Source: Paragordius varius
Taxonomy: Eukaryota > Animalia > Nematomorpha
NCBI GenBank assembly: GCA_964247055.1
Contig: OZ176054.1
Coordinates: forward strand, 12,028,001-12,092,000
Direction: 5' to 3'
DNA length: 64,000 bases
The position numbers and the translations under genes were made by a program. Position 1 is the stretch's first letter. Each line of letters opens with the position of its first letter. The notes below the pieces were generated by a model that made no database searches, was not told where the DNA came from, and saw only the letters and a program-made list of their open reading frames with translations. Below are positions 16,111-59,146 of this stretch, piece by piece.

Positions 16111-16308
16111 AACCTTTATTATCGTGTCATATAGTTACTAATATTATTTAATCCATTTTTAAGCAATTAAAAATTATTATTTATAAATGTCCATCCATAT
16201 CATGGGGCCTCCAGAAAAACTGTATTTTGTGTCTTTTTTCAAATTTTAGCGCAATTCTGTTTTGCATACATTCAATTACAACAGTTGAATTCGTCTGCTT
16301 CGGTTAAA

Positions 16309-18776: not shown

Positions 18777-18822
<46 letters not shown>

Positions 18823-21800: not shown

Positions 21801-24800
21801 TATATTTATAATATTTAAAATATGAAGATTTTTGTTTAAAGATAAATTGAATAATAACTCTTTTATTAAATAAAATATATAACATGGATTAGTTTATTCA
21901 TTTAAAATCGATGGTGTTTAGGCCTTTAGTAGGAAACGGATTGAGGATCGCAAAGAATGGCTTAAACGATGGATGGAGGAAAGAAAAGAACGGCGATTAC
22001 AAAATTTGCCAGAGTTATTTTTGTATGGGAAAAGTGCGAGTCATCTCACATATTCCGACTTCATTAACAAGGAGTTAGTCTTGTTCAGTAATATGGATAA
22101 TGAACGCTCTATCCCTAGCATATGTGATGGTATGCAGAATAGTTTTGTTTTTTAGGGTTTGAAAGACGGTTTTTTTTCTCTATATCGAATATGAATATTA
22201 TTACAAATGCTTTTTTTCGCTTTAAAAAACGAAATAATTCAGCAAGGAAAAAGAATCTAAGGTAAGCATAATTATAAATATATTTTATAAACGAATAATA
22301 TTAGCTATGGTGTTTTTTTAGGATTGAGGATTTTTTCTATTTATGCCTAATTAGGATCTGATTAAACATACTTTTTGCATATTATGAATAACAGTTTTTT
22401 TTACATTTTATATTGCCTTTCTTAAATATTGGGCATTATATTTGGGGAGTCGGACTAAAACTTTATTTTTTTACATGGTTTTATTAAGTATTTGAAAGAT
22501 ACTATGATTTTAATTTTAAATATATTTATATATGCCTTTATATAATATGAACGAAAAGCAAAAATGATTTTGTAAATTCATTAATCGACTAAGATATTAC
22601 ATTTTTGATTTTAGCATGACTTAACCTCAGAAAATATTTTATCACAACTATTATATCTATATACTTGTCCATATACAATTATTTAGGTCTCAAACCTGGT
22701 CAACGCAAAGTTTTATTCACTTGCTTTAAACGTAATGATAAACGGGAAGTCAAAGTTGCCCAATTAGCGGGTTCTGTATCAGAGCTATCGGCCTATCACC
22801 ATGGCGAGGTTAAATATTACATTAATTTTTATAAATTAAAAAATGTACTTTAAAGATGCATTTTATTAAATCCCTATAAAAAAATTTTAGGATTGTGTTA
22901 TAATTTTGTAAACTCCAAGTATATTTTTATGGCATGACCAATGAATGTATTTATAACTTTGAATAAATGTAATTGTTATAAAAAAATCACCAGCATTTAA
23001 AACCGGTTAATAAACGATTATTATTATTATATTTTAATCGTTCCACACCCAACCCTACTACATAAAAGCGCATATTATGCTCTAATTAATTATTTAGCTA
23101 TTTTTGCTTTTTTCATTTGCATATAATGAACAACTTTTTATTTTGTTTAGGCTTCACTCATGGGTACCATCATAAATTTGGCCCAAAATTATGTGGGGAG
23201 CAATAATCTTAACATACTCAGACCTAATGGTCAGTTTGGAAGCCGTTTGAGGGGTGGTAAAGATGCAGCCAGTCCTCGTTACATATTTACTATGTTAAGG
23301 TTCGTTTTTACTAAAATTCTTACATAAATTTCTCATTTTAAATATTTTATAGGCAACATATATACAGTGTTTTAAATGTCCTCTAATGACTTATTAATAT
23401 CCATTTTGTTTGTTGGATTTGTGACCAATTTTATTAGTTTTAGTCAATTAGTTTGCATCCGTTATTATTGATTGGAGTTTTTTAGTTGCTTTTTATTTTT
23501 ATAAATATTATCTATTCAAATTTCTATTAGTTTTAGTCAATTTATTTACTTTTTTTACACCCTACCCTTTTCTTCTTAATGCGCTTTTAGAAAAAATACC
23601 ATTGTTTCCAACTATATCGAAATACATTAAGATTACATTAACTATCATACCAAAAAAGTTTAACCATTATTTGAGAAACCTTTAGTTTACATTTCAATTA
23701 TTCTTACTGTACATATATTCACTTTCACTTATGTCTAGTCCAATAACACGAGCCCTATTTAGCCCGCTGGATGATCCCGTTTTAAATTACTTAACGGATG
23801 ATAATTTACGCGTAGAACCGGAATGGTATTGTCCCATTATACCTATGATCTTGGTTAATGGAGCTGAGGGGATTGGCACCGGTTGGTCCACCAAAATACC
23901 CAATTATGATACGCGCGAAGTTGTACGTAACATTATACACATGATTCATGTGGATCAAGAACGGACTAAAAAAGATGGGTAAATTAATTTGATATATGTA
24001 TAGGAAAACCTATAATGATGTGGAATGGTATGGTAGGTTTAGGGCGACTGACTTTTAAATTGCCCGAAACTGTGCAATTTTCCCAACATCATTGTGTCAG
24101 CCATGGACAGGCAAGCGAGTGTTAAAGCCTTCGCAACTTTTGTACAATTTTAGTCCTTACCCTTTAATATAAAAAGGAAAAAAGAAAATATAAAATATAA
24201 TTTATCTATCATATAAGTACCAATAATGGGTTTGTTAGTTTTTGTTTTTAAATTTATATTTCTCTTTAAATGCCAAAAGTATTGACTTTTTGGATTATGG
24301 TAGTTCGATTTGAAACATAAGTTATTATATACCTCTTTTATGTACAGTCTATGTGTGTGATTGAGTATTTTAAATAATAAAACTTTTAATACACTATACA
24401 CTGTGTGGTTTAAATACGACTTTTAAAATCTATTGTTGTTTTTTTACCCAATTTGTGAAACTTTATCCATAGTAATTGAATCAACCTCAAAAAACCAACA
24501 AAATATTATTTTATTGGTCATTTTTATTATTAATTTATTTTTAGTAGATAGATATAAAAGTGTTTTATGATTTATATCCAGTTTTTGCTTAACTTTAATT
24601 AAACTTCTAATACTGTAAAAAATTTCAGTTTATTAAAATTTAATCTTAGATAACCAATTATTATGATAACTAGTGAAAGTGAAAACAATGAATCATTGCC
24701 AACCCCTTTCCATATGATACCGCGTTACAAGAATTACAAGGGAGAAATTTTGGAAATTGAACCGGAACGATGCATGAGTTTTGGTGAAATTAAGGTTTTT

Positions 24801-27800
24801 AATAATTTTATTTAAATTACAAAATGTACTTCAAATAATATATATTTTTATAAAGCTTAAACCACGGTAAAAATTAATAAAAAATCTAAAAAAAGAATTT
24901 GAAAGCAGCATTTATAGTTACATTTAATTCCCTTACAAGAAGGTTTAAATAACTCCTTAACTGTTAATAATAAACATATAATTAATATACATAATCCCCC
25001 TATCATAAATGTATCTTCTATCGCTTTATCCAAATATTCATATATATATATATATATATATATATTTCTAACAATTTTATTTTTCACTTTAATCCAAATA
25101 TACAGGTCTTAAGCAGTAATCAAACGACAAATGCCGCATACACTGACCTGCAAGATGAAATCGAAGATATATGTGGATCCGATCCCAAAGCCGTGGTTGA
25201 ATTGGAGATTACAGAGCTACCGATTCATAAATGGACGGATGATTATAAAACTTTCCTCGATGACTTACTTACAGGTGAAAATTCTTCAAATGCAAACACC
25301 ACAAATTCAACAAAAAGTGGAACAACACAAAATCAGTCTCAGTCTAGTCAGCCTTCAATCCTTGATTACAAAGATTATTGTACGGAAGATAGTATACGGT
25401 TCTTGGTTAAAATGAGTCGACAAAAGTATCTTGAAGCACGTAAAGAGGTACATAGATAGCAATATCCTTTTATTACCAAATGAGATTTTTACATTTAAAG
25501 TGCATATAATGTGTGATTCGATGTTGATGATTAACACATGATTACTTTTAAAATATTTTTTAATAAAGTTTTTAAAATGATGACCTAGGATGGACCTTTT
25601 ATTCAAATGTATGATAATTGGTATCGCTAACCACTTAATGGGTGCTGTCTAATTAAGGAGACCCGCAAAGTGGTATAATTCTTTGGTTTGAATACCTTTC
25701 TTTTACTTATATTTAAGCACAAACTGAGTTTGTTATCTATAAAATAGTTAGAAAGTTATTAAATTATGGGGATTAATGTGCGCATTTAAATATCAGAAAT
25801 AAATTGTTTGTGAGATCGAGCGAGACTTAAGACTTTTCAATTTTAATATGATTTTTATATTATTATTTTTTTCTTAAGGGACTACACAAATTTTTCAAAT
25901 TACAAACACCCATCAGTTTAAACTCTATGGTTTTGTTTGATGCCAATGGTGTACTTAAACGGTACAGCAGAGTTGAAAGCATTATCCAAGAATTTTATCA
26001 AACTCGGCTTGCATATTACCAAAAACGTAAACTGTACATGCAAGGTATAAATATATTGTTTTGTAGTTTTTTGACGTCGATTAAATTTCTCCTGAAATAC
26101 ATAAATCTGAAGTGTTATTTTAGACATTTGGATGAATTATTTGATCGGCATATATGCAAGAAAAATGCTCGTAAAAATACCTTTTTATATTGAAAGATTA
26201 TATAATTTTAAAATTTATTTAACTTGTTATTCAATTTTAACAGTCATAAAATTATGATTTATATTCAAAAAATAATCAAGGTATTTTTTTCACTAAATTT
26301 TCACAATTAATAGGACTGTTCCTTAAAATTATTTATTTTTGTTTTTTTTATTAATTAATTAATTTGTTTTATACATACTAAGGTTTATTAACGGCTGAAG
26401 CCACAAAGTTGGATATGCAAGCTAGATTCATACTTGAAAAAATTCGTGGGGACATTAAGCTTGAAAATGTGAAGCGTGTCGACATTATAAAAACTCTCAT
26501 TTCTCGTGGTTACTTACCAGATCCTGTTAAGGTTAAAACTTAAATAGTTAAATTAAAAATGCATATTTTTTAGAAGCAAAAAACATAAAAAGTTAAGGAA
26601 TTATGTATGTTTTTTGTAAAAAAACATATTTTTAAACTATATTAATTTAAATAACCTATCACTTTGTTTGTGTTGCGGAATAAAGGTAAAGATGTACATG
26701 GTAACCTACCGAAAAAAAACAGTTTTTGATCGTAATAATAAATGCAAATTACTGTTGTACCTTTATGTTTTATACAGATTATTATTCGTATATAAGCTTA
26801 ATTTTATAAGTACCCACGTTCCTAATCTATTATCCATATATTGTGTACAGAAATGGAAACATTCTGTCGATGCCGATAATCCAGAAGAAAATGAGGAACC
26901 TAGCAACACTGAAGATGGCGAAAACGAGGCATCAAAATCCACCCAAGATTTTGAATATTTGCTGGGAATGCCTTTATGGAGTTTAACCAAGGAAAGAGTC
27001 GAGGATTTGATTCAGAAACAAAAAACTAAGGTAGGTATTTTTTTGACTTTGGGGCTTGCTTTTTCATTGCTTTTTTTCTTTTGTATGCCGTTTGACTCCC
27101 ACATTTCATTCCAGTTTGGATTCTGAAAGCATAAGAATCTACTAAAAATTAGTCTTTCAAAGCGTACAAGGGGCACTTCTATATATTTATATATATGAAC
27201 CTTACGTGCTTAGTATTGAGAAAACGTAAATGTTTTTATGTTTAATACATGGTAGATGCATAACACAAAATGACAAATTATTAATAATAGATAGATAAAA
27301 CAAAATACTCATTTTTTTATTTTATTCCTAAGAATGCCGAATTAGCCCATTTGAAGAGTCAAACAATTCATATGCTTTGGCTCAAAGACCTTGAACATTT
27401 TATACAAGAACTTGATAAATGGGAAGCCCACGAAACTGAAGAGGGCAATAAAACCGCATTGTCTTCAAAATCATCGGGCTCTAAGAGTCTTTCCTCCAAA
27501 AATAAGGTAAAATATTACGAATTTATTTTTATAATGGTGGGTTTAAAATTATATGCCTGCTAAATTAATTTAAATATTTATAAATTAAAATCCTCTAGAA
27601 ACGTTTGATTTATTTCTTTATGAAATTGATTGATTAGCGTTCGATTAATATTTTCTAATTTAATGATGTTTAATATTCTTTTGTAATTTTATTTTAAAAA
27701 ATTGATAAATTTGGCATCTACTATCGTTATTAACTTTAGGATTTAATATGAGTATTAACTGTATATATATATTTTTTATTTCTCTCAATTAACATCTCCA

Positions 27801-28911
27801 AGTTTCCTACTAATATATTTAATTCTATTTCTCTGTTTAGAAAACCGATAAACACTTTTTGCCATCAACCCATGGTATGAGGATTAAACCTGAAATAGAT
27901 TCTGGTACGCTTATAAAAATTGAAAAATCGAAACGGGATGCGCTTTCAAACCCAAACAGCGCAAATGGCGGCCCTACAAAAGGATTAAGCCGTAAAAAAC
28001 AGGCTATTTATGATGCTTTTGCAGGTGTTACCACTCCAAAAACACAGGAAAAGTTTCAAAAAAGTTCTTTAGCAGCCGCCACAAATGAAGGTGATAAATC
28101 GTCTTCAATCAATTCCGACGATATACAAATGTTGGATGAAACGATGGAAAATTCTGTTCCTATCGATAAAGGACACGGTGATAACTTCAACACCAATAAT
28201 AAAAAAACCAAAAATGGTGAAGTTAACACTAAAAAAGTTACAAATAAGAAAGCAGTAATTGGCGATGGAGCACCAACTAAACGAGGCCGTAAAAAAGCCA
28301 ATGGTGGTCCAGAAATTCTTTCCTCCACAAACGCTTCAACAAATGGGAAAAAATCATCGTCTACGATTGAAGCATTCCTTGTACCAAAAACAAAAACCAC
28401 ATCATCAAAAGTAGCATCTACTGTTAATGTTCATAAGCGAACACACAAAGTTGAATCCTCAGACAGTGAGGAAGACATTAATTTTGATGATCTTCTTAGT
28501 GCCCATGATTCTGATGATGATTTTGAAAGTCGACCAAAAGTTGCTAAAACATCGTCTAAAACTAAAGAAAGAACGGTGAAAAAAAGTAAAAGTACTATGT
28601 CCAATAACCTACACCCCATCATTGCATCTGTAATTAAAGAGGATAGTCCACCACCTTTGAGGGCCCGTTTGGCTCGAACATGCGTTGGAACTAAAACTTA
28701 TCATGACAGTGGGGAGGAAGCATTATCAGACACTAATAACGCACACCCCGATAAGAATATTTCAGATGCTGAGTCTGATAATGAAATACCCGTATCGCCC
28801 AACAAAAGAGCCAAAATCCGTAAACAAATTAGCGATGATGATGACGATGAATCGTATCATGGGGAAAGTGATGTAGCCTCTGATTACATTGCTGAAAGCT
28901 TTGAACAGTGA
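16309..28911 (+). CDS. TOP2: DNA topoisomerase II (type IIA), 1636 aa, 21 exons
   Basis: Exons 16309-16356, 16443-16601, 16627-16781, 16810-17053, 17332-17547, 18229-18504, 18823-19017, 19411-19650, 20524-20760, 21153-21371, 21922-22129, 22687-22808, 23151-23299, 23739-23978, 24674-24794, 25106-25447, 25879-26044, 26383-26531, 26851-27030, 27333-27506, 27841-28911. All introns GT-AG, phases consistent, 4911 nt total. Motifs: EILVNAADN, GGRNGYGAKL (GHKL), TEGDSAK, PLRGK, DQDQDGSH (TOPRIM), AASPRY (catalytic Tyr at 23280-23282), and a long Lys/Ser/acidic C-terminal domain. Confidence 0.97.
18779..18818. repeat. (AT)20 microsatellite directly before the TOP2 intron 6 acceptor
   Basis: (AT)20 followed by AAAG|ATTAAAAATCAT (exon 7). 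Confidence 0.95.
24010..24125 (-). mobile_element. LINE/SINE 3' tail fragment in TOP2 intron 14
   Basis: On the minus strand it ends ...GCCCTAA ACCTACCATACCATTCC, resembling the tails at about 13040 and 45010. Confidence 0.3.
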
Positions 28912-39389: not shown

Positions 39390-41108
39390 CCTTCGCGATG
39401 TCGGTGGGCTGTAAATGATCCGCTGCAAAGGATTCGATAACGTGTACGAGTATATGCCTGTTCTTTCCAAAATTAAACCTTTTCTCCACCCCCTATTGAT
39501 TTTATTCTTTATATACACCTCATCGTCCGGTGTGAAAATTTAATTGGGTATGATGTCGTCATCTAATTATTGCGAGGGTGTTTCCTTAACCCAGGAGAAG
39601 GGGATATTGATATTTCTTTTGAGGAATAAGTTATACGGACACTTCTAGAGGACCGAAAATATCAAGATATATCCGTTCCTATATATCTGTATTGAAGTTC
39701 TATTTGAACGTGCGACAGTTTTTTATTTTATTCCGGTTTAACTGAAACTTCATACCCCTGGCAGATTCTTTCATTCTTTTTGCCCTCGAATGTCTAACAC
39801 AAGTGACGTTTTTTTTGCGCAAGCACTGGATATAATAAGGCAATCGCCCTAATACAGCAACCCATATGATTCTCGTATTTCGTTTCTTTTACTCAATATC
39901 GAAACTTAAAATTGGAGTTGACCAATCATTATTGAAACCGCTCTTAATATCATCAAAAACTCATCCCATAGAGTAATTTCTTTTATCCGCTCTACGTTTA
40001 AGTTATCCATTGTTAAACGCATCCATCCTACTATTATTAATATTTTTCAGATCTCTCTTATAGCCAAACAGCTTGATTAGTGGCTTATGATCGGTTAATA
40101 TTACGAACTCTCTACCATACACAAACATTTAAAACTTTTCTAGCGCACATAAAATTGCCCTTGCTTCTTTTTCTATCAGAGAAAAATGTTATTCTGAATT
40201 CGCACATTTCCGAGAAGCAAAAGATATGGGTCTTTTTCCATCACTTGTCATATGTGATAAGACTGATCCACTTTATTCGATTTACCGTAGCCCCACTAAC
40301 AATTATCTAAGTAAACCGCCGTACCCTGATAATCTTTTAATAACTCATCCATAATTTGTTAAAGAATCGTGGGGTGTATGAAAATTCTAAATGGAAGTCT
40401 CTTAAATCGAAAAAGACCTGATAAGGGAAGTAAACGTGATTAAATTTTGATTGGCGGATGTGCATTGGTCAGTAGGCCTCTTGATCCAGGGTCGTAAAAA
40501 CTTTTTAGTGTTCAATTTTGAAAAACCAATTAAAAGTTGGAATCAAATGATCGACTGGAATCAAACTTTGGTTAGCTGTAACTTTAAAAACCACATATGC
40601 GAATATCATTATCATTCTCTTAACTATCACCAACGGAGATACACGTCGATTCGTTGCGAGGGTTTATGGCTTGAATAATACCTAGACCCACGAGCCTTTT
40701 TAATTCCCTCTCCACCTTAGCCTCAAGCGGGATGGGTCTCCTCTGAGCTGCAAATCTTATTTTGATGCTACCTTTTTCAGAAACAACTTGATGGGTGGTC
40801 CCATGTAACATCCAATACTCTCATAAAAGAAATCCTTAAATTTAAGTAAATCCTTATAACTAACATTCTTTGCACATCATCTGGAAATCTGCATTGAAAG
40901 CTTTTCATCCGCGGTAACCCAGAAATTTCACCCCTATCCTCCCTGGTAACCATACATCATACCATTCCATTTGACCTTTACCACCCATTGCCCCCATCAC
41001 CTCCACACGTTGATGATTGAACCCACTATTGGACTCGCGTGTGCTAAAGCCTCCCAATCTCCTTCCAGGTACTTTTCCCAATCACTGATATTTGAGCCTC
41101 GGTATCGA
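39390..41108 (-). mobile_element. Ty3/Gypsy LTR retrotransposon pol remnant (protease-RT-RNase H-integrase pieces)
   Basis: Minus-strand remnants: RRPIPLEAKVERELKRLVGLGII, VYLD, RPISFASRK..EKEARAI..F.YGREF..TDHKPL. Many stops and frameshifts. Boundaries approximate. Confidence 0.85.
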
Positions 41109-41367
41109 AGATCATAACCCATTAATCATTCAGTCTTACTTGCGTGATTCTTATTATTACTATTCAGTTTATTGACTCGCCGACAACACCTTCTTAAATG
41201 TTCATCGGTAACACTCTTTGTTTGAAGAGGGACACCTTCTATTCCGACAATGTGTCTTCAAGCGATTTAATCAATATTTTACAACTTTCATCCTGAACAA
41301 TTTTATTATATGATGAGAGAAATAGCTGTAACGAGTGTTTCTATGGCAACGCCAAACTATACAACAC

Positions 41368-42830
41368 TGGCATCCGCTATGGCTCTCTAAATAACTGTAC
41401 TTGAAATAGGTTTTTTGCGATTCATTATATCTTCAAATTCTTGAGATACGTCCAATTGGCAAATTCTTGCTCGATATCGGTATACAAATCAATAGCGACT
41501 TCATCCGACATAATTGGGAAAAGTACCTGGAAGGAGATTGGGAGGCTTTAGCACACACGAGTCCAATAGTGGGGTTAAATCATCAACGTGTGGAGGTGAT
41601 GGGGGCAATGGGTGGTAAAAGTCAAATGGAATTGTATTATGTATGGTTACCAGGGAAGATTGGGGTAAAATTTTTGGGTTACTGCGGATGAAAAGCTTTC
41701 AATGCAGATTTCCAGATGATGTCTGTGCAAAGAATGTTAGTTATATGGATTTAAATATATTTAAGGATTTGTTTTATGAGAGTATTGGATGTTACATGGG
41801 ACCACCTATCAAGTTGTTTCTGAAAAAAGGTAGCATCAAAAAAAGATTTGCAGCTCAGAGGAGACCCATTCCGCTTGAGGCTAAGGTGGAGAGGGAATTA
41901 AAAAGGCTCGAGAGTCTAGGTATTATTTAAGCCATAAACCCTCGCAGCGAATCGACTGGGTATCTCCGTTGGAGATAGTTAATAGAATGATAATGATATT
42001 CGCATATGTGGTGATTTTAAAGTTAGATTTAACCAAAGTTTGATTCCAGTCGATCATTTGATTCCGACTTTTAATTGGTTTTTCGAAATTGAACAGGAAA
42101 AAGTTTTTACGACCCTGGATCAAAAAGAGGCCTACTGACCAATGATCCACCAAACAAAAATCCTGTATAGGACGTTTTTGGATTTAAGAGACTTCCATTT
42201 GGAATTTTTATACACCCACCATATTTCAACAAATTATGGATGAGTTATTAAAAGATTATCCGGGTACGGCGGTTTATTTAGATGAAGCTACGGTAATGGA
42301 GTATAATGGCTTGGAAAAAGTTTTGAACAAATTAGCTTCTCTTGGTAGGAATTAAATGAGAATAAAATCCAATTAACTCGTTCTTCGGTGTCATTTTAAG
42401 GATAATCTCAGAAAATGGAATTAAACCTGATGAAAACGTAAAAACAATTTTGATTTTTCCTACACTTACCAATAAATCACTCCGGTCTTTCCTGAGAAAG
42501 TTGAATTTTCACGCTTGTTTTAATCCATTTTTGCATGCTACAATTGCGGACTTACATGCGCTAACAGGTTCTAAGAATGGTGTTGGTCGACAAAAGAAGA
42601 GATGGTTTTTGATAAAGCTAAACTGTTTGTGAGTAGGCCATTATGTCTAATACCGTTTAACCCGAACCTTCCATTGGTGTTGGAAACAGACGCAGCGAAT
42701 GACAGATTGGGAGCAGTCTTATCACATAACAGTAATGAAAAACGGCCGATAGCTTTTGCGTCTCGAAAATGTGTGAAGGGCATTGCTGGGTGATTGAAAA
42801 AAAGGAGGGGCAATTTATATGGGCTAGAAA
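41368..42830 (+). mobile_element. Ty3/Gypsy pol remnant, inverted relative to the adjacent copy
   Basis: ORFs 41643-41930 and 42602-42793, plus DIRICGDFK, TTLDQKEAY, AVYLDE and LVLETDAANDRLGAVLSH..RPIAFASRK. A possible LTR end and PBS (TACAACA-C-TGGCATCCG) at 41360-41376. Boundaries approximate. Confidence 0.85.
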
Positions 42831-43647
42831 TTTTTGTCATTCAATTTAATCAATTTTATTGTTTTATTGGTTCTCGAATAATCACATTTGAAAACTTTTC
42901 TAGCGCATATAATAGTGCCCTTTAACATATTAATTTTATACCACATAAATGATGCTTTCAAATCAAACTCTGTGATGGACTTCTCAATTTAACGAATGCT
43001 ATGAATGCGTCTGGGTTATTTAAAGAAATTTCCGCTTAGGTGAGACCCACCCACCATAATATTGGTTTTAAAATATTGATTTACATGAATGGCTAATTAG
43101 AAAAAAGAATTTTTCATTGATTTACAAATAGGCCAAGGGCGACAAACCGAATATTTGATTTTCAATTTAGGCCCACGCCGTGCAGAATATATCTTTTTGA
43201 TCTATTTTTTTATTTTCAAATTTTTGGAATTTAGAAATGATAGTTTTATCAGACAAACGCGTGGCCTACTACGCTAGTCGTAATATAAATAGATATCAAA
43301 CCAGGAATTAAAATTTCGATGATAATCCAAAGTATTAGCAAAATACGGAAAACATCCTTAACTGAAGATAAAATAAAGATATGAAATGCAATGTTAAAAT
43401 AAAGATATGAAATGGAATGTTAAAATAATTATTAAAAAATATTGTATACCTCATTACCCATCCTAATCGCACAACTTTGCCAAAATTATTTTAACAAAAA
43501 GCGTAAATTATTTTATCAAACAATTTAAATGGATGCACATTTTTAGGAAAATTAGTTTTCATTCAAATTTTTAAGATTTAATATATTTTATTACAGGTAA
43601 TGAACGTACAATTGCATTTTCCATTGACTAAAAGTATTCAATAAATT

Positions 43648-46600: not shown

Positions 46601-49600
46601 ACAAATATATTAGAACAATTATATTTTTATAAGTTTGATTATGAGGATTCCAACAATCTTTTCAAGCGATTCGCAGGAATGTTTTTTGGCAAATCTCGTT
46701 AACAACCCATTCTTAACAAATTTGTTTTATAAGGTTTGGCGGGTTGAACGATGTGACCAAAAAAATATTTAATTTGCATATAATAATTTGTATTCTCGTA
46801 AAATTTATTGAATTCAAACTATATCCAAAATTTTAGATACATAAGAGTATCTTTTTCAATGGATTAACTAAAATAAAAGAAAATAATAATAAGAATTTCA
46901 AATTTTGTTTTAATTAATCTTATTATTATTTTCTTTTATTTTAGTTAATCCATTGAAAAAGATACTCTCATGTATCGAAAATTTTGGATATAGTTTGAAT
47001 TCAATAAATTTTACGAGAATACAAATTATTATTTAAAAAAAATATTTAACTTGCATATAATAATAAATTCTTAAATTTCAAACTTTATAATCCGGTTTAA
47101 TATAGCTTAGTTTTAGTATATAAACTTCTAAAGCACGCTGAAAACAATCCATCAAAATCATTGGCTAAAAGAGATGACCTTAAAAAGTCTCATAATAACT
47201 AACTATTTATGATAAGCATTTATGGGCATTATAAAACAAATTTGGAGTATGCTATGCTAAGTTGTATTTGGTTTTATTGTTTGATTTAGCATAAACCTTG
47301 TATGTGATATTAACTCGCTATCTTTTCGGGAAAAATTGTCTTATTATTAATTTCTTGTAACAATGTTTTTTTATGATAAATCCACATCCCTTTTTTGATA
47401 TATATATATATATATAAAATCTGTTAAATAATTCACGAGTATATAAAAAAATGCCTATTATTATTTTTAATTTTAAAGAAAAAAAAACTCCTCAATAATT
47501 ATATAACTAAGGGATTTTATAAACAACAAAATGTGTAATTTTATAAATTAGTAATTGTGTATTTTGGGCATTACTTTATACCACATGCCAAATTTATCTG
47601 TACTAAATTAGATCCAACAAACAGATTAAAAATTTTGAATTCTGGTTATTTTTATTATCAATGATTTAAATATTTTACACATATTTGAGAACCTTAAAAT
47701 CTAACCCTTTAAATGTAATTTAACAAATTAAAAAATATTTTTCCGCCCATCATACATACAAAATAAATCCAAAAAAGTAAAATTAACAAAATACCATTAG
47801 CATGTTCAAGCGTTTGATTGTGGTAAAGATTTTGTGGGCTTAAGGCTAAAAAATTATCCTGGGATTTTAACATTGCCCCCATAACCTGTTGAGGGGAACG
47901 TACCCGACTCATGTGTGGAAGGATAAAGTTTGATAAACTTTTTTCGGCATAACAAACCCAACCAGGACATATACTAGATATGATTGGAAATTGAAGGCCA
48001 TCATTAGCTTTTGACCTTTGGATATATTCTATTTTTCAAGATCGATATATATATATATATGAAAAAACTAAAAGACAAATAATTTTTTGGAAAAAAACCA
48101 TATATACTAAACTATATATACTGTATTATCCGTTTGTGTATGTCGATAATTAACTAATATCCAAAAAATATGGTACTCTTTTTAGAAAATATATTGTAAT
48201 TTAGTTTTTACGCGATTGTATAAAATTTTAACTGTATCCCACTCATGATAAGCTTTCTTAAATAATAACGCCCACATAACAGTAAAAATTGAAATTAAAG
48301 GGAAAACGTAAAAATATAAAGACAAACATACTTTTTAAATCTTAATTTTTTTTGGATATAACTCATTGTTTTGAGCTGTAAATGAAATAGAGATGTATAT
48401 TGGTAACACAATCAATTATGTATTTTTTGATTGTAATGAAATGATTTTTATAGGATAAATTAAGGTTTGAAAAAAATATGGTTGTTTTTTAAAAAAAAAT
48501 CTTTATTTTTACGTTTTAGCTGTAAAATTTCAGTTTTTACTGTAATGCTGATCAACATGCACTCTTCTAATTATAAAATAGGACCCTAATATTTTGATTA
48601 TCTTTCAAAATTGAGCATACCATCCCACAAAATTACTAATTTATGGGGCATTTCGGCTGATCATGATCTAAAAATCAAAAAAATTTCTAAATTTTTAGAT
48701 GAAACTATTATTGATTGTCATATAATATAATAAATATAATATTTAATAAAAAATAATTTTTAATATTTTTTAATAGCGGTGATATTGTGGAAAATCTACT
48801 TTATTTTTATTATAATTGGGGACATTGTAGTAAAGGGGGGCAGGGGGGAAGTCGAATGTATAAGAAATAATATTTTAAAATTTTTAGAATAAATATAGAT
48901 TTTTATAGATGTAATAGTATTAAATTAATGAAAAGAATTGAAATAAAACAAATTTATCTTACCGTATCATCAAGCAAAAAATTGGGAGTTAATATTTGGT
49001 TTATAAATCTTTTTTAAATTATTTTACGGCGAACTTCACTTTAATATTAATATGTTATATAAAAAGTAATTACCTTCATCGTTAGTCCTATCTTCATTAA
49101 ACGTTGTTTGATAAAGGGAAACAAATTCTTTGGCTGATTCAAGCAAACTCATATTCCGCGCAAAAACACTGTTAACAAAGAGTTTAGTATCTGAATAACG
49201 GATAAAGAAATTATTTAGTTATATTATCAGTCATTTTATAGGGTATTATGCAAATAAGTCTAATAACAAAAAGTTTAGTATTTGAATAACGGATAAAGTA
49301 ATTATTTAGCAATATTATCATTCATTTTATAGGATATTATGCAAATAAGTCTAATAACAAAAAGTTTAGTATTTGAATAACGGATAAAGTAATTATTTAG
49401 CTATATTATCATTCATTTTATAGGATATTATGCAAATATATCAAATATTTTTTGTAAATTAGTTTCGCATTAAAATTATATGCGTTTCTTATAAGTTTTC
49501 CTAATTTAGGGATTTATAAAAATTAATTTATGGAGATTCAGATTCCATAAATATAAAAGAAAAAATCGGGCTAAATTTAAGGAATATGCACATAAAGAAT

Positions 49601-50418
49601 AAAATAAAGTACCGTAATGTTTTTGAAAGAAGTAGGATAAATTTTGTGCCGTTTTAAGCACAGACATATTGTAATAGATTGATAGTGAGGTAAGACTTTG
49701 TAATGAGCATGAGACTACAATAGGACGCCGTTGTTTAAACTAACAATTATTATTAAATATTATGTAGTGTAAAATTAAAATTATAATGACAGGACAAATA
49801 TATTTTGCTTATAAAGACATCCATACCTTTTTAAACCATTACTTGTTCCAATATAACTTAAGTGATATATCAAAATATAAATATTGCTACCAATTTAAAT
49901 TTTCATTCCAGAATTCGCCACCCAAAATTATAGCATTAACAAAAATTAGATTCAAAAAATATGCCAATCTATATTTAATATATATTTAGTATTTAAGTTT
50001 TGTCCTTATAATTTAAATAATTATTGTTTAGAAAAACATATTACTTGGGATATATTTATATTTTCCTCATACACTTTATTTAGTTCATCGACACTTTGTT
50101 GAGTTATTAAAACTGTTTCGGCCGATGTTACACAACCACTGCATGCAAGACAATCACTTAAAGTGATCTGAGCTTTTTTCAGAGGTAACTCTTTGCCTTT
50201 ATCGTCAATTTGAGTATATTTTCCATCCTTTATTCGAATACTATGTAGTTTAATGCTATCAGTTATAGTAGGAGACTCTACGGGTTTTATGCAATCCTAA
50301 ATTTTAACCATATATTATCAGATTATTAATATGGGAAAAAATATTAATTTACCTGAGACGGGGCGATATAATCATCTAAATCTACCAGTTTTAAAATTCC
50401 TCCGAAATTCGATACCAT
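43648..50418 (-). CDS. CIAO3: Cytosolic Fe-S cluster assembly component 3 (NARFL/IOP1/Nar1), about 628 aa, 9 exons
   Basis: Exons (minus) 50418-50353, 50296-50045, 49739-49613, 49190-49074, 48028-47795, 46441-46140, 45748-45552, 44591-44419, 44066-43648. Total 1887 nt, phases consistent. Motifs: LDDYIAPSQDCIKP, DCLACSGCVTSAE, SICPGW, SPQQVMG, IMPCYDKKLEA, GSGGY, AYGFKNIQN, EIMACPGGCLNGGGQ. Small additional exons in the long introns cannot be excluded. Confidence 0.93.
44800..45035 (+). mobile_element. RTE-type LINE 3' end in CIAO3 intron 7 (antisense to the gene)
   Basis: NVDGKRKRGR...KDRKLWRE remnant followed by a stop and a CCTA/CCTG microsatellite tail. Confidence 0.6.
46780..47032. repeat. 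Near-perfect inverted repeat (115-bp arms, 23-nt loop) in CIAO3 intron 5
   Basis: 46780-46894 is the reverse complement of 46918-47032, with about 2 mismatches. The arm is related to 3611-3700. Confidence 0.9.
49174..49438. repeat. 91-bp tandem repeat (about 2.9 copies) spanning a CIAO3 3' splice site
   Basis: Units offset by exactly 91 nt (CTG at 49191, TTG at 49282, TTG at 49373). Confidence 0.9.
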
Positions 50419-50456
50419 CGTTTACGCACACATTCGTTAAAACAAACGCAAAAAAC

Positions 50457-51206
50457 ATGCGTCTTCAAGATCCCGAATATTTTCCAAAGGAATTAAATAT
50501 TAAATTTATTCCTAATAGCATTGATACTTTCCATATTCTTATCATATTTTTTACAGCTTTCGGCTTTTTATTCATCGCTATTTGGAGATTTTATGAAAAT
50601 AAAAGTGTTAACCATAGATTTTTTATATTTTGGTTTACGATGTCCGGACTAATTCATTGCTTCCTGGAAGGATATCTTGTGTTAAATCACAAATCGGTAT
50701 CCATGGAAAACCATATATTTGCTCAAATTTGGAAAGAATATGCATATTCCGACAGCAGATACCTGATGTAATGATTGTTATTTTTAATTTATATATTTTT
50801 GCCTTATGCTATATAATAATTTAATTTTTTTAGCTCTGACCCTTTTACTATTTCTATGGAAGCTGTAACTGCCCTGATTGTTGGTCCACTCAGTTTACTT
50901 ACAGCTTATTTTTATATCCGAAATGACAAGAAATATCTAATTTATGGCCTTTTGGTGTCGCTGTGTCAATTATATGGTGACATTTTATACATTGGGACAA
51001 ATTGGTTCGAACATTTTAAATACACTTGTCCATACGATGGAATTTATTTTTGGTTTTATTTTATTGGTCTCAATGCACCTTGGATTATCATTCCAATCGA
51101 TTACATAGCTTACAGTATTAATGAGTTAACGAAATTTGTGGGATCTCAAACAATCACAAACACTACAACATCCTATAATGAAGATAAACCCCTAAAATGG
51201 GATTAA
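50457..51206 (+). CDS. EBP: 3-beta-hydroxysteroid delta8-delta7 isomerase (emopamil-binding protein), 227 aa
   Basis: Exons 50457-50767 and 50834-51206, with a 66-nt GT-AG intron. Motifs GLIHCFLEGY, WKEYAYSDSRY, SMEAVTA, GLNAPWIIIP. DSRY fits EBP rather than EBPL (DARW), from recalled sequences. Confidence 0.9.
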
Positions 51207-51315
51207 TATTCAAATATGCATTTTATTTTTTAACTAAACACAACACATATCATATTTATCTCAAATTTACAACGCAACATATGCATACATCAAAAAAAAG
51301 ATCAAAATGGATATG

Positions 51316-51789
51316 TTATTTAAATATATTTTTGCGTTTGTTATGGATTTGTTTTGGTGGTTTTATATTTAAACGTTTTACGAATTGGATGGTGGAACCA
51401 TGTGTAATTCCATAATCTTCAACATGTGCGTTATCTTGCATTAATTTTTTGTTTTGACATATTAGCCAAAACTCTTGCCAAATATGCTTCCAATTTATAT
51501 TGTGTTTTCCTGTGTTCAAAACTATCATTCGGTTGAGAACATGTTTAATGAGTGTTTTTAAGTCTTGTACGGTGCATTCAAAAGGGATATAGAGAGGTAT
51601 TAGGGTGTCATCAAACTTTTTTAAATTTACTGAGTAAGCTTCAAATTTTTCCCATGCGAGGATTGATTTGAGTTCAGGTATCGAAATAGAGGAATAAATA
51701 TCCGAAAGTATTGGTGTTTCTTTCAATATGTGGGTTAACTTTTTGCGTAAACTTTTAAGCGATTTTTGAGTACCTTTTTCCATGTTCAT
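51316..51789 (-). CDS. SNRNP25: U11/U12 snRNP 25 kDa protein (ubiquitin-like fold), intronless, 155-157 aa
   Basis: PILSDI..SIPELKS.LAWE..AYSVNLKKFD..IPLYI...TVQDLKTLI...HNINWKHIWQEFWL...KLMQD...EDYGI...TIQFVKRL follows the SNRNP25 pattern. Start at 51789 or 51783. Confidence 0.88.
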   Translation of the reverse strand: MNMEKGTQKSLKSLRKKLTHILKETPILSDIYSSISIPELKSILAWEKFEAYSVNLKKFDDTLIPLYIPFECTVQDLKTLIKHVLNRMIVLNTGKHNINWKHIWQEFWLICQNKKLMQDNAHVEDYGITHGSTIQFVKRLNIKPPKQIHNKRKNIFK

Positions 51790-51804
51790 TCATTTATTCA
51801 AAAA

Positions 51805-54161
51805 ATGTTAAATTTTCAAACTACTGTGATAAAGCATGCTTTAGCTTACGACTATCTTAAAGGGACATGCGATAACACCAATCTCAAATTAGGGGTATTT
51901 GGTTCGACACTCCTGAAAAATTTAAAAAATGAATGGTATTTCTATTGTAATTATCGATTAGGATTAACAGTTTTGTTAAAAAAGAACCAAACATCCTTAT
52001 GTCCGAACCATACACCGGAGTAGGTATAAAATGCAACATTATTTTAGAAAATATAAAATTTGCAAACGGTAATTTTGGTTACTGCAATATAGTAAAAGGA
52101 GCAACCAGACAAATTGAAAGGTATTAAAGATATAAAATTTAGGGAAGTCCTTTACAAATAAATCTAGAGGGAAACTTAACATATTCCACCATTTTTAATG
52201 GGAATTTAAAGGAAATATCTGATGTATGGCGCACTAAGAGATTATTATTTTGGCGACAAGTATAAATACTCACATTTTATTAGTTTTTTAATCAACCACA
52301 TTACCTGACAAATTTATGTGTCCAACAATCCGATATAAACCATAATGAACCTTATACTTCGCATTGTCTAAGTTTTAACGCCAATGATTTATATAATACA
52401 CCTGCAAAAAATAAAAATGATCATGATAATATTTCATTTGAAAAACTTATCATAAAGGCCCAAAAACACAAAACTCATAGTTTTATACTAAATTTAAACA
52501 TTGTTTTCCAATCCATTTTATGGGCAATTTTGTGTGATGCCTCCGCCCCAACACCATTGAATAAAATTAGTTTTGAAAGAGCAAGCCAAGAATCTTGCGA
52601 CAATTCATCACAGGTAACAGAAAATTAATATATCAAACAAATTTTATCGTTTATACCATTCATTTATCAAGGTTATATTTAATTAGTTAAAAAAGTTTAG
52701 ATAATATAGAATTATCATAATGTGGCTTGTTAATTTCTATAAAACGATTATGTTTAGTATTTTTAATATAGGGTGGGACTTCAAACTCTATCTATATTAC
52801 AACTTAGGTAAATAAAAAAGTATGAATTCATAAATAAGGTAAACTTCAAATTGAGGCGAGTCCCATTTATGAGATTAATATGACTTTTAATTTGAAGTCT
52901 AACGTTAAATTGAATATTTTCCTTCGTTAACATATGGTAGTTATTTGTTTGTTATACAAGAGACTTTAAATACTGTAAAATTAAAACTTGATCCGGTTTT
53001 TTAGGTTGCAATATGTTTTCATTAAAAATATGTCGGAATCCTTATTTATTGGTCAAAGAATTACCATTTCAGTTTTTCATAATTAATAAATATTATATTA
53101 CAAAATTATAACCATCTAAACAGCAAGTGTACCATTTTTTACATCTTCAAAAATATAATTTTGCAATTCAAATACATCGGTTGTCGTTGAAACTCGCTCC
53201 AAAACATTCGAAAAAACGATTGATTATATCCAAAATTTTGCGTTAAATTTATAATAAACACATTTTTTTCTTTTGTAATCTGATTTTAAAAGTTTTTCAA
53301 TATTTTTATTTATTACAAATTTTGTTTCCATATTACATATAGACTCTTAGACTTCATCATAAAATTTCACCGTTTCAAATTAGCATTATATATCCCATAG
53401 AATGCGTTGCCCTGCTTGAATATGTTCAGAAAAAAATCCATCTAAATTCTGCTACACTTTTTGGCCCATGGGAATATTCTTCAGACGACAAAAATAATTA
53501 CGTGCCTTATTTAAATTAGTAAAAATTATTATTATATTATACGGTAAAAATTTAATTTATACCGACAAAACGTATAAATATAAAGATAAATTTTGTTTAA
53601 AAAAGACAACTATAATTTTTCAATATCGAATTTTCGATATATAAATAATTATTTAAGATTGCAAAGTATAAATTGGTTAATCAATGTTATAATTTATTAA
53701 TGTAAATAGATAAAATTAATATCGGAAAAATTTAGATTTAAAAAAAAATGATTGCTTTTAGAAAATATATTTGTCTCTATAATTTTACGATTTAATAAAT
53801 TAAAAAAAGTCCATGTTCTCTTTATTTTAAAATGTTTATTTGAGGAAAAGATTACCCTATAAATGAAATTTATGCGCTATTTTCTAGGTTTAAAATTTTT
53901 TATTTTGAAAATATTAGTTGTGATAGTATTGGAATCCCTTACATCATTAATATTCGGAAATCGACTTTAATCGATGGAATAATTGGTATTCGAAACCGGG
54001 ATACTAAAATAGAAGTTCATAACTGTTTTATCATACATATTTTTTCTTAAATTCAAATTTAATTTTTGAAAGCATTTTAAATATATATTTTTTTGTTATA
54101 GGAGGAAATCCATATCACCGAAATATCCAAATATCTGGACACTTATTTGAACCGCTACTAA
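51805..54161 (+). CDS. POLG2: Mitochondrial DNA polymerase gamma accessory subunit, about 346-354 aa
   Basis: Exons 51805-51935, 51962-52023, 52048-52120, 52148-52259, 52284-52613, 53343-53518, 53918-54014, 54102-54161. The 24-nt 52024-52047 intron is optional because it is a multiple of three and stop-free. The 52148 acceptor is inferred from frame. Motifs LGVFGSTLLKNLKNEW, WRTKRLLFWRQF, LRLHHKISPFQI, CDSIGIPY..STLIDGIIGIRNRDTKIEEEIHI match POLG2. Largely missed by the ORF track. Confidence 0.85.
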
Positions 54162-54419
54162 ATTGAATAATAAATTTTTTGAAAAAAAATGTTTTTGATG
54201 TATATTGCAGGACTGATGTTGAATACATTTAGGCCGTAGTCAAGGGGCATTGTTAATATATAAAAAGTATATTGTTTAAAATTGTAGTGAGAAAAATATA
54301 TTTTTACCTTTAATTGTTAAAAAAATTCAATTATATTTTGTTGGATAACGAAGTATTTATGTCCAAATATAAAACTTATTCAGCATTATTATATAATTAA
54401 CCATCATCATTTGTATGGA

Positions 54420-54815
54420 GATTCGCCGTTAAATGGCGGTACACCCGTTTTTTCCAGTCTTTTCTTGATTTGGATAATTCTAAATTTAAATTAAGCGATT
54501 CGAGGTCTTATGTTATTGTGTTGAGCCATGTGGTATGAGGTCTACCGGATTTGGTTGGTAGTTTAACCGAGTAATTTTTTATAGTTTTAAAAATATGTGC
54601 CTATCTCCCCGTCTCTCAATATGTCCAGTCCATTGTAATCGGAGATTACTAATAAGGTTGAGATTTAGAATATGGTACGGGTTAATGGATTATTCGTTAT
54701 AGTTGCATTTAAATGGATTTTGTGTGCGAATAATATTGTTTTCAGTATTTTGGATTCGTTTGTTTTTAACATCGACCAGGGGGGTCCAGATCCGTATATA
54801 AGGACGGGACTAATA
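54420..54815 (-). mobile_element. RTE-type LINE 3' remnant
   Basis: Minus-strand remnants RPVLIYGS ... LRLQWTGHIERR ... GRPHTTWLNTI ... RKDWK. Confidence 0.7.
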
Positions 54816-56011
54816 ACTGTTGTATAAATGGCACACTTAGTTTATAGTTTGACGAATATATTAATAATATTTTTATTGAATGGTTTTATTATGCGATGTT
54901 TAATTGCATGTTATAAAAAGTGCTTACTGTTTCTCTATATTGAGAGGGTTGGAAATTGAATTGATTGTTAAATTATTGATATAATATTTAACCATGCTGA
55001 GCATTTATAATTTTTTTCGTAGTCATTAGTTTTGAAAAATAAGCATTGGCTTTATAAACTAATTAAGTTTTTGAAAGTGCATTTTACAAAAAATTAAGAT
55101 AAAATCCGTCATATTATATTCAATAATTTTGGATTTAGAAAAAAATATACATAATAAAAAAAAGTCCATAATTATTCATGTTTATGTTTAATTTATGCGA
55201 AAATCGTAGGGATCTTTATTTAATAATACGTTTTAATTGAATTTTTTTATCACCACTGGGTTTGATAAAATTGCGATTAAACAACATTCAAAACTTATGA
55301 AAAAAATGGGCAAGAATTTTTTGCATGAATCGTAAAAAGTGCTGGTACAAAACAGTATAGAAATATTTGCACACGATATCTTTGAAAAAATATATAATCC
55401 TTTTTTATCATGTGGAAAATGGGATTGTAAATTCATATTTAGATTCCTTCAATATAAATCACAGAATTTTAAACATTACAAGAAAAATAATTAATTCAAT
55501 AAATATCACCACAAAAAAATTTCTCCTTTATCAAAAAATAATTATTTAAAAATCGGTTCCACAAAAAAAATGTGATAATAAATTTATTTATATGGTAGAT
55601 ATTTTCAAATAATGAATATATAAGTAATAAAAGATTATAAAATCTATATAAAATAATGAACTATAATATTAGGTTAATTCAATCACAAAGTTCGCACACC
55701 AACAAAGTTATCTTTTTTCCTGTATTTAAAATAATTTATAATTTGAAAATTATACTGGATATAAAAAATTGCATATGGTACAGATGTTATTTAAAGAATT
55801 ATAAAAAATAAAATTATTCTAAAGTTTAACAAGTCTAAAATAAAATCATAATTTTTTCCATTTTCTACAAAAATTAGCTAAAAAACCTTATTTATAAAAT
55901 ATATATATATAACCATCCCCAAACTGTAATAAAAAATGCATGTAAAATATATCAAATTTTCTAGGTGACAGAGTTGTCATTTAAAGTATTGATTGTCCTT
56001 TGTTTAATCAT

Positions 56012-58436
56012 TTAGGCTGGTAACTTGAGGTTTTTTCCTTTCAACACTAAATTAATATTAAAATTAAAAAAAAATTATTTTAATGAATGCCAAAACTTAT
56101 TAATATTAGTTGATAATTAATCGTTTATAATGAATGAAAAATATTAACATAAAATGTTAATTAAAACATGCCACAAAGAATTATTTTTTAATAAATTATA
56201 AAAAGTCTAATCTCACTTAAACAACTCAAAATAACAACTTGGCAGAAAAATTGTTTTAATGAACTCTTAATCCAAAAATTAGTTCGTGAAATGGTGAAAC
56301 TGAAGTAAAAACAAAGATAATTCACAAAAGATCTTTGTTTTGCGGCACAAAATCATGGCATTAAAAGCTAAACTTAGATCGACAAACAAATTTTACATTG
56401 ATATTAATATTTAATAGATAAGGTTGAATTTAAATAATTGTAGTCCACAATGTGACCAATTTACTATTTTAAACATTTAATTTAAACAATAATTTTTGTA
56501 AAATTTAGCTATATATATATTTAAGCGCTAAAAAATAATATCAAAATTATTCATTCAATTACCCTTAGTAACGTACAGGTAAAAGAAATCACAATAGAGG
56601 ATCGTTTGAACACAACCAGACACAATAGCTATCCAATCGCGGTGTCCCTCAACATAGTACCTGATTATAAAATTAAAATTTATTATTAATAAAAAATATT
56701 ATTATCTTAAATTTATATTTCAACTAAAAATTATTGATTGGAATTACAATGGGGATTTATAATAACTATAACATAGAAGTATAATATACCTGTATATCCA
56801 ATTCAAAATGTAGAGAGCTCGGTAAGAACCCAAAGCGAACAAATAGTGACTTGTAATGGTTTCAGCCTCACCTATTGCAAGGATAAATCATACATATGTT
56901 TGGAAAAACAAAATTACAGAGTCAAAAAGTAGAAACTAAAAAGCAAATATTCTTTTATAAAAACAACAGCCATGCTTTTATAAACCACCCCCCTGATTTT
57001 TTCTATACAAACCATATATTAACATTTTTGAAACATATAATTAAGTGTGTATTTCATCTCTATCCTTATTTTGCGACGCAAATGTTGAGTTATATCGACA
57101 AAAAAGTTGTATTATTTAAAAAAAATTGTCTTTTAATTTTCAGGTGTCGGCTGTGTAAATCAACCCCTCCCCCCCCCCCCCTCCAAAAAAAACATTATAT
57201 AAAAAAACGTCTATAACTTAATCAGGTCATGATAGTTATCAAACACTTTTGCAATTTTAAATAGGATTAAGTTATTATCGTTTAATGTAGAAAACAACCT
57301 ACTTCCCTAATGAGTCAAAAAATAATGAAAAAAAATTAATTCATATATTTTTTCCCACAACCACGGTCATTAGAGAGGAGATTTCTCTGTATATAAAATG
57401 TTAAAAGGTCCCAATTAAACTCTTAGTAAATGATATATCCATTTTATATATTTTTGATTTACATTTTATATAGTATCAATAGTCCAACCAATAACTTTTT
57501 GCAATCGAATTAGGTATGTCGTGTTTTATGTAATTTTTTTTAAAAAAAATGGACTTAATTCTATGAAGATTTTTTAACATAAATTAACCATTAGTTTTTG
57601 TAGCAACAATAAAATTGTTAAAAATTAATAAATATACATAAATATTCAATTATTTCCCACCTGTTTTGCTAACCATAAAAAGTTGGGGTAAAATAGCCAC
57701 AGCCTCCAAATAAATTGAAAAAGTCCATAAAATTTCAAGGATTGAAAATTCGTGATTAATCAGCAGGGAAAGTATGACAGAGGGGATTATAAGGGACTCG
57801 ATTCGGAATGTATCGTGATTCCGATCATAAGTTACTCTAAACTATATTATTGGTAAAAAAATTGCGATAAATATTTGAAAATAATTATATTAACTGATAA
57901 TTATAATAGTACTTAAATAAATAACATAGATTCAGTTAATATATCTGTTATAAATAAAACTTATTCCAACATAGGTTCGTTTAATCTTCCATTGATTAAC
58001 CATTTTAATTTTTAGATTATTTTTATCGCAAAATTTAAATTTAAAAAATAGAGGAAATTTCTACTATACCAACAAAACCATTATGTTAAATGAAAATAAT
58101 GAAGAATTTTAAAAATAATATACTTTAAAATAAATGAGATAGATGGTGGCATAAGATGCGACCAAGAATATAACTTTCATAACCGAGTTGTAAAGAGATA
58201 TATAAGTAAGGAACAAGTCAACATATCTTGTAGTATAGACCAAAGCAAATAATATTTGGGATTTTCCAGATATTCCTAATATATTCAACATGTAATTTTA
58301 AATTTATTAAGCGAATTAATTTAAAAGAGTTTTGATATAAATTACCAGCACAAGAACGAGTTTTCCATATTTTAAGAAGCAGGATTAAGATTGCAAATAG
58401 ATGGGACAAATCCCCAACTAAACGAAAAACGTTCAT
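56012..58436 (-). CDS. KDELR: ER lumen protein-retaining (KDEL) receptor, 212 aa, 6 exons
   Basis: Exons (minus) 58436-58346, 58275-58124, 57841-57661, 56871-56790, 56660-56563, 56046-56012. Total 639 nt. [55 protein letters not shown]. Confidence 0.97.
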
Positions 58437-58525
58437 GTCGTTGTATGAAAATCGCAATGTGCAAAAACACGTGGCAAGACCATTAATTATTTGGATTTTA
58501 AAAAATCAGCGATATTATAAAATAA
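58437..58525. promoter_or_regulatory. Bidirectional promoter region KDELR/PYM1 with a TGCCACGTGT (CREB3/CrebA/XBP1-type) site
   Basis: 89 nt between divergent ATGs. ACACGTGGCA at 58467-58476. Confidence 0.55.
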
Positions 58526-59146
58526 ATGAGGACAGGGACTGTGGTAGATAAAGAAGGTTGTTTTATTCTTTATTTCTAGGAAATACATTTTTACCTGCCT
58601 CTCAAAGACCAGATGGAAGTTGGAGAAAGCAAACGAAAGTAAAGGCTGGATATATACCCCAAGAAGAAGTTCCAGTGTAATCTTTATATCTAAATAAAAC
58701 AGATATGAAATTAAGCCTAAAAGTCAAATTGTTGGCACAAAAATTAATAAGTCTTTACCGCCTGGTTTAAATTTGGTCAACAGAGCAAATAATATGCCCA
58801 AACCTAAAAGCAAGGAAAATAAATCGCTAGATATGTCCGACATCAAAACACAAATTATGGGCATAGGTAATTTTAAATTATATATTATTAAGATTCAAAA
58901 TCTCATTCCAAAACAAAACTTTCAGAATCTACAGGCCTACAGTCTCAAAAAGTAGCTTTAACGTCTGACACTCTAAAAAACAAAATACGAAATTTAAAGA
59001 AACGACTCAAGCAAATTGAAGATTTAAAAAAAAAGCTGGTAAATGGAGAATCAATCGATAAAGAACAAATGGATAAAATTGATAAGCAACAAAGTGTTGA
59101 GTCTGAAATGGCTAAATATGAACAAATTTTGAGGGAGATATCTTAA
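58526..59146 (+). CDS. PYM1: Partner of Y14 and Mago (PYM/wibg), 181 aa, 4 exons
   Basis: Exons 58526-58556, 58580-58676, 58703-58866, 58893-59146, separated by introns of 23, 26 and 26 nt. N-terminal [31 protein letters not shown] and C-terminal [22 protein letters not shown] match PYM. Confidence 0.93.

Follow-up and report, generated by a model that had tools for sequence, protein, structure and literature searches.

Within the 64,000-nt stretch of the Paragordius varius genome analysed here (the window), two adjacent genes are arranged head to head on opposite strands, no other gene lying between them: a homologue of SNRNP25 (U11/U12 snRNP 25K) on the minus strand, and a probable POLG2 on the plus strand. 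The SNRNP25 reading frame starts at the CAT of positions 51787-51789, which is an ATG on the minus strand, and the POLG2 reading frame starts at the plus-strand ATG of 51805-51807. Read directly from the window sequence, the two start codons are separated by a spacer of 15 nt, TCATTTATTCAAAAA (51790-51804, no strand assigned), exactly as the initial annotation had claimed. An independent DNA contig from the public run X1 covers positions 51632-52166 and differs from the window at three positions, none of them in the spacer, indicating that the junction is not an assembly artefact.

The identity of the minus-strand gene as an SNRNP25 homologue is firm by homology. Its coding sequence occupies a single exon (51316-51789, minus strand) of 157 codons plus stop. 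The translated product matched the human U11/U12 snRNP 25K structure in the PDB (8r7n_B, E = 7.7e-15), with query residues 23-141 corresponding to human residues 12-130 of 132, and the Pfam Ubiquitin_4 domain (PF18036) over residues 52-139 (2.8e-23). A scan of 1.84 billion representatives returned 249 relatives, the best of which, P0001 from assembly GCA_954871325.2, is 41% identical and aligns through its residues 9-139 with query residues 11-141. Since the alignment begins at residue 11, the protein is homologous almost to its first residue. This bears out one half of the earlier claim that both proteins resemble their families close to their starts; the POLG2 half was not confirmed, as the only family match of that gene is a weak one in a C-terminal exon. 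Exact-protein look-ups with the 157-aa and 155-aa versions of SNRNP25 gave no contig match, and a word search with SNRNP25 for relatives found nothing.

There is little freedom in placing the SNRNP25 start. The first ATG is immediately preceded by an in-frame TGA, and the next in-frame methionine after Met3 is residue 88, inside the ubiquitin-like domain, so only Met1, with its A at 51789, and Met3, with its A at 51783, can be the start. Met3 (51781-51783, minus strand, context GAACATGG) has an A at -3 and a G at +4, while Met1 has a T at -3, and a start at Met3 makes the N-terminus exactly collinear with P0001. Met3 is likely to be the start codon in use, in which case the spacer would measure 21 nt, the alternative distance that had also been given in the initial annotation. 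An out-of-frame minus-strand ATG with its A at 51793 opens an upstream reading frame of 12 codons plus stop (51755-51793), which overlaps the SNRNP25 start and is present just as previously described. Downstream, SNRNP25 runs towards EBP, and only 109 nt (51207-51315) separate the two stop codons, which obliges the 3' ends as well to be short or to overlap; SNRNP25 has an AATAAA ~90 nt beyond its stop.

The plus-strand gene is a probable POLG2, for which a model of seven exons and ~354 codons was assembled from open frames and GT..AG junctions, very short introns being allowed. Exon 1 (51805-51935) contains no in-frame ATG other than the start codon, and the frame opened by this codon runs for 72 codons with no further ATG inside. 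It would be joined, from frame 0 to frame 2, by a 26-nt GT..TAG intron (51936-51961) to exon 2 (51962-52120, placed from frames only, with an alternative end at 52091 and a 51-nt intron). The remaining predicted exons, all on the plus strand, are exon 3 (52148-52259), exon 4 (52284-52613), which follows a 24-nt GT..TAG intron (52260-52283), exon 5 (53343-53518), exon 6 (53918-54014) and the last exon, which includes the stop codon (54102-54161). The six introns of 26, 27 (or 51), 24, 729, 399 and 87 nt are all of the GT..AG type, and their acceptors are TAG, save that intron 2 in its 27-nt form has AAG.

Exon 6 would carry part of an anticodon-binding-like domain. Its match to the Pfam HGTP_anticodon family (E = 0.0047, 17.5 bits) is below the cut-off of 21, and its best PDB match is Pol gamma B (5c53_B, E = 0.04), followed by the archaeal protein NEQ417 (5z5e_A, 0.066). 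The other exons, including the N-terminal synthetase-like region, matched nothing in PDB, Pfam or Atlas when searched singly. A genome-wide search with HGTP_anticodon recovered four or five other loci, and the POLG2 locus was absent from the results at E <= 0.1. Several exons of the plus-strand model look POLG2-like beside the human sequence, a resemblance that serves as a lead. Among the population differences listed for the POLG2 exons, eight are synonymous and five are non-synonymous; in exon 1, those at 51858 and 51876 are synonymous and the one at 51821 changes Thr6 to Asn. For SNRNP25, the listed variants comprise two synonymous and no non-synonymous changes. These counts fit two working genes.

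Upstream of the POLG2 start, the nearest in-frame stop is at 51748-51750, and none of the 18 codons that follow it is an ATG, in agreement with the initial annotation. An out-of-frame ATG on the plus strand opens a reading frame of nine codons plus stop (51782-51811) that overlaps the POLG2 start. Out-of-frame ATGs are thus found at -23 from POLG2 and at -4 from SNRNP25, and each upstream reading frame overlaps the real start. An ATG-free leader could measure at most 22 nt for POLG2 and at most 3-9 nt for SNRNP25, and a leader that began further upstream would carry inhibitory overlapping upstream reading frames.

Divergent pairs are defined by a distance of under 1 kb between transcription start sites (PMC2670823). 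With only 15 nt between the start codons, such a distance is implied here unless a distant 5' exon exists. SNRNP25/POLG2 is a divergent gene pair with a predicted bidirectional promoter, and its spacing is far tighter than usual. If both start codons are correct, then with 15 nt between them either the 5' ends overlap into the coding exon of the partner, or the leaders are no longer than ~15-20 nt. Crossed promoters, near-leaderless messages and trans-splicing had all been proposed beforehand; the geometry forces one of the first two if the starts are correct, while trans-splicing is disfavoured by the results given below.

The pair is not isolated in the window. The six recognisable housekeeping genes located between 43.6 and 59.2 kb are arranged as three head-to-head pairs. 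In the first, NARFL/CIAO3 (A of the minus-strand start at 50418) and EBP (plus-strand ATG at 50457) are separated by 38 nt; exon 1 of NARFL/CIAO3 has 22 codons (50353-50418, minus strand) and its downstream exons match Fe_hyd_lg_C, and exon 1 of EBP, an EXPERA gene, spans 50457-50768 on the plus strand, with exon 2 matching PF05241 (1.6e-16). In the third, the KDEL receptor gene (KDELR; exon 1 at 58346-58436, minus strand, A of the start at 58436) faces PYM (exon 1 at 58526-58556, plus strand, ATG at 58526) across 89 nt. The claim that SNRNP25/POLG2 was the third tight divergent pair in 8 kb was thus accurate, with distances of 38, 15 and 89 nt, and the idea of a general promoter system in this genome gains support from three tight pairs among six housekeeping genes.

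Exon 1 of PYM is followed by a 23-nt GT..TAG intron (58557-58579), and the Mago-bind domain (5.8e-14) begins directly after it, which provides independent support for tiny introns in the window. Long introns occur beside the tight starts: those of NARFL are several kb in length, and two in POLG2 measure 729 and 399 nt. The tightness is therefore specific to the 5' ends, and the genome is not compact in general. G+C content in the window is 23-30%, except for one stretch of 38% at 40-42 kb. No promoter word shared by the three pairs emerged, since 25 6-mers were in common against 28 expected, and no 8- or 9-mers were. In 200 kb of flanking sequence, 36 ORF pairs were counted against 20 in a reversed-sequence control, which is not clearly higher; no further conserved gene pair was found in that flank, where transposon-like ORFs are present. 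The EBP frame has no stop in the 42 codons that precede its likely start, beginning with an ATG at 50331 (50331-50456), and this open stretch is antisense to NARFL exon 1 and to the first part of NARFL intron 1; an open frame of this kind has a chance of ~2% at the local composition.

In the assembly that encodes the best SNRNP25 relative (GCA_954871325.2, 27% G+C), the single related hairworm genome compared, SNRNP25 faces Nup98 across 731 nt (locus L001, 7270-8000), and no POLG2-like sequence was detected within 8 kb of SNRNP25. The pairing of SNRNP25 with POLG2 is consequently not ancient. The head-to-head spacing of 731 nt in that genome is also much looser than in the genome of the window.

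The best explanation of the locus, to which we give a probability of roughly 45%, is that a single shared initiation zone lies in and around the spacer. Two intact and ordinary housekeeping genes would be driven from one very small common zone, and both transcripts would begin within the 15-21-nt spacer or at its margins. With leaders of only ~5-25 nt for each message, the 5' ends would meet edge to edge or overlap slightly, by no more than a few tens of bases, so that each initiation complex would contact the first coding exon of the partner gene. Cap-proximal AUGs would be poorly read on such short leaders; most SNRNP25 translation would then start at the second AUG, which is well placed, and that of POLG2 at the AUG of 51805. 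We infer both the positions of the transcription starts and the mode of translation from the sequence.

Two overlapping TCAKTY words, the arthropod initiator, lie at the junction (51786-51795, plus strand), with the A at +1 falling on 51788 and 51792. POLG2 transcripts initiated at these words would have leaders of 17 and 13 nt. The word occurs 185 times per 128 kb of strand in the window, and ~0.03 matches are expected in the 20-nt ATG-free stretch before POLG2. Both words are the reverse complements of minus-strand ATG contexts, AAATGA and GAATGA, and they may be either a start context that doubles as the initiator of the partner gene or a by-product of that context. The sequence TCATTT, which is the reverse complement of AAATGA and fits TCAKTY perfectly, was also observed at the starts of PYM (58524-58529) and of a probable TOP2 (16307-16312), as well as at that of SNRNP25.

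Some points count against short leaders. Upstream ATGs within 60 nt of the six genes are not depleted (6 against ~6.5 expected), in a sample that is far too small for weight to be placed on it. Animal mRNAs with leaders of this length are a minority class elsewhere. The five runs that contain the stretch are all DNA, and the four that were aligned to 49500-55400 gave contigs that continue through introns, haplotype bubbles and no GT..AG joints.

A broader version of the shared initiation zone can be put forward, although we consider it rather unlikely. It holds that the housekeeping genes of this genome use ultra-compact two-way initiators, with transcription start sites within ~20 nt of each other, in which the A-rich start context of one gene (TCATTY on the opposite strand) serves as the initiator of its partner, and that the near-leaderless messages so produced are translated with no normal scanning. 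We know of no animal for which such a promoter and translation architecture has been described.

The alternative that survives best, possible but doubtful in our judgement, places each transcription start 30-150 nt or more inside the first coding exon of the partner gene, so that both mRNAs have leaders of ordinary length which are mutually antisense and bear upstream reading frames. Crossed 5' ends of this kind are known in other animals, as 5.2% of the divergent pairs of Drosophila overlap (PMC2670823), and T-rich tracts are found upstream of POLG2, within the SNRNP25 exon. However, crossed leaders would hold overlapping out-of-frame upstream reading frames directly before both starts, and such promoters would yield complementary 5' ends.

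Alternatively, one or both start codons could be mis-assigned, with coding sequences that overlap on opposite strands; this appears unlikely. Mitochondrial proteins need a presequence, but among the first 20 POLG2 residues read from 51805, which include two Lys/Arg and one acidic residue, no obvious mitochondrial presequence is seen. Only ~6 residues, without presequence character, presumably precede the first family-like stretch of human-type POLG2. With no visible room for a presequence at 51805, the true start may lie upstream, inside the SNRNP25 exon on the opposite strand. In the 150 nt upstream of POLG2 a single in-frame spliced extension can be modelled, consisting of a speculative mini-exon, ATG TGG (51728-51733, plus strand), followed by a 26-nt GT..AG intron (51734-51759), after which the frame resumes at 51760. 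It would add 17 residues, MWRFLSTFFHVHSFIQK, encoded antisense to SNRNP25 codons 11-21.

This candidate extension is presequence-like, with no acidic residues, five Ser/Thr and three Lys/Arg plus three His, and an intron length of 23-27 nt is nothing unusual for this genome. Nevertheless, an equally presequence-like extension was obtained in 5.9% of dinucleotide shuffles and from 5.1% of random genomic ATGs. A variant on the SNRNP25 side starts at the ATG of 51793 and uses a 22-nt GT..AG intron (51773-51752) that restores the frame; against it, the unspliced SNRNP25 N-terminus is already collinear with P0001. Both candidate introns end in AAG, while nearly all supported acceptors here are TAG. 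The mini-exon start of POLG2 is a minority reading, and the 51793 start of SNRNP25 with its 22-nt intron carries little weight.

It is quite improbable that the leaders come from elsewhere, either from a distant non-coding 5' exon or from a spliced leader joined at an AG upstream of each ATG. Nematodes, which form the sister phylum, trans-splice their mRNAs, and AG-ending tracts had been described 35-40 nt upstream on both strands; an AG does lie exactly 34 nt upstream of the start on each strand, but the one on the POLG2 side is GAG rather than YAG. No YAG occurs within 80 nt upstream of POLG2, NARFL or KDELR, and no AG of any kind was found within 80 nt upstream of KDELR. On the SNRNP25 side, an upstream CAG and TAG would give leaders of 34 and 31 nt. 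The search for a spliced leader that had been suggested came out against this option, as the SL1 family (RF00198) had no match at E <= 1 in the 110.6-Mb genome and consistent YAG acceptors are missing. The 43-60 kb part of the window, searched against Rfam, matched none of its families. Literature searches turned up no paper on trans-splicing or gene pairs in hairworms. Very improbable, finally, is a decaying or mis-modelled plus-strand gene that would leave only one real promoter: the family match is limited to the C-terminal exon of POLG2, below the Pfam cut-off, and the N-terminal exons match nothing, but the model is open from ATG to stop with canonical GT..AG junctions, its exon variants number eight synonymous against five non-synonymous, and the other HGTP_anticodon genes of the genome sit at different loci.

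The shared initiation zone can be compared with several known systems. Like the bidirectional promoters of Drosophila and vertebrates, it involves opposite-strand neighbours with facing 5' ends, often housekeeping genes, and a presumed common regulatory DNA (PMC2670823). Most divergent pairs of Drosophila have distances of 200-400 bp between transcription start sites, and 5.2% of them overlap at their 5' ends (PMC2670823). Here, unlike in those pairs, even the start codons are only 15 nt apart, and such closeness seems to be usual among the housekeeping genes of this genome. Lefai and colleagues reportedly described, in 2000 (Insect Mol Biol), a compact Drosophila gene cluster for the mitochondrial DNA polymerase that includes POLG2, in which promoter regions are bidirectional and the 5' ends of one gene pair overlap. 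Both arrangements are tightly packed and include POLG2, or a probable POLG2 here, but the partner genes and the phylum differ, and the likeness is best taken as a lead.

A second point of comparison is TISU, a mammalian element with the consensus SAASATGGCGGC (PMC3177215), in which 5-30 nt separate the transcription start and the AUG. The median leader of TISU mRNAs is 12 nt (PMC2518114), and short leaders lead to leaky scanning past weak cap-proximal AUGs (PMC3177215). Like the present pair, TISU genes have housekeeping and mitochondrial functions; in them a single element around the AUG acts in transcription as well as in translation. The SNRNP25 Met3 sequence, GAACATGGAAAA, matches the first 8 of the 12 TISU positions (SAASATGG), but the 3' half, CGGC, is absent, and by this comparison Met3 is not a TISU member. 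The context of the POLG2 start does not match the TISU consensus.

The compact protist and microsporidian genomes of Giardia and Encephalitozoon, where transcription is near-leaderless and overlapping, also have start codons a few bases from transcription starts and promoters within neighbouring genes. Those genomes are compact throughout, in contrast to the one studied here, which contains kb-long introns and gene deserts and in which only the 5' ends are pressed together. In the nematodes, SL1 trans-splicing at bidirectional promoters would uncouple the position of the start codon from that of the promoter, but here the genome search revealed no SL1-like gene, and the sequences before the start codons lack a consistent acceptor.

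In current models, divergent transcription start sites are placed ~100-200 bp apart at the edges of nucleosome-free regions, and animal leaders are long enough for scanning. A genome with kb-long introns and housekeeping start codons less than 90 nt apart cannot obey both models. It would offer a natural system to study the minimum distance between two working polymerase II initiation complexes, coding sequence that doubles as core promoter, and the translation of very short leaders. SNRNP25/POLG2 adds the question of where a mitochondrial replication protein takes its import signal from when there is no room upstream. Alone, the locus proves no mechanism; it is a clean and well-defined case for 5'-end mapping.

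Other features were observed in the window. A multi-exon DNA topoisomerase II-like gene, identified from peptides read by eye, extends over 16300-28900 on the plus strand; its start lies near 16.3 kb, where it has no obvious tight divergent partner. Retrotransposon remnants at 40400-42900, in the 38% G+C stretch, include reverse-transcriptase-like ORFs in several frames that are partly duplicated. In all runs, the depth of DNA words in 53440-53833 and in 54425-54818 exceeds that of the adjoining sequence 10- to 100-fold, indicating high-copy repeats in the fifth intron of POLG2 and just downstream of the gene. Haplotype differences were evident in sample S2 (run X3), where two haplotypes differ from the reference by 1 and 20 letters within the 222 nt of 51922-52143, and where 10-11 letters differ within the 230 nt of 51535-51764. 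Around both starts (~51734-51952), S2 apparently has a single path among the differences listed, which could reflect lower diversity at the common 5' region.
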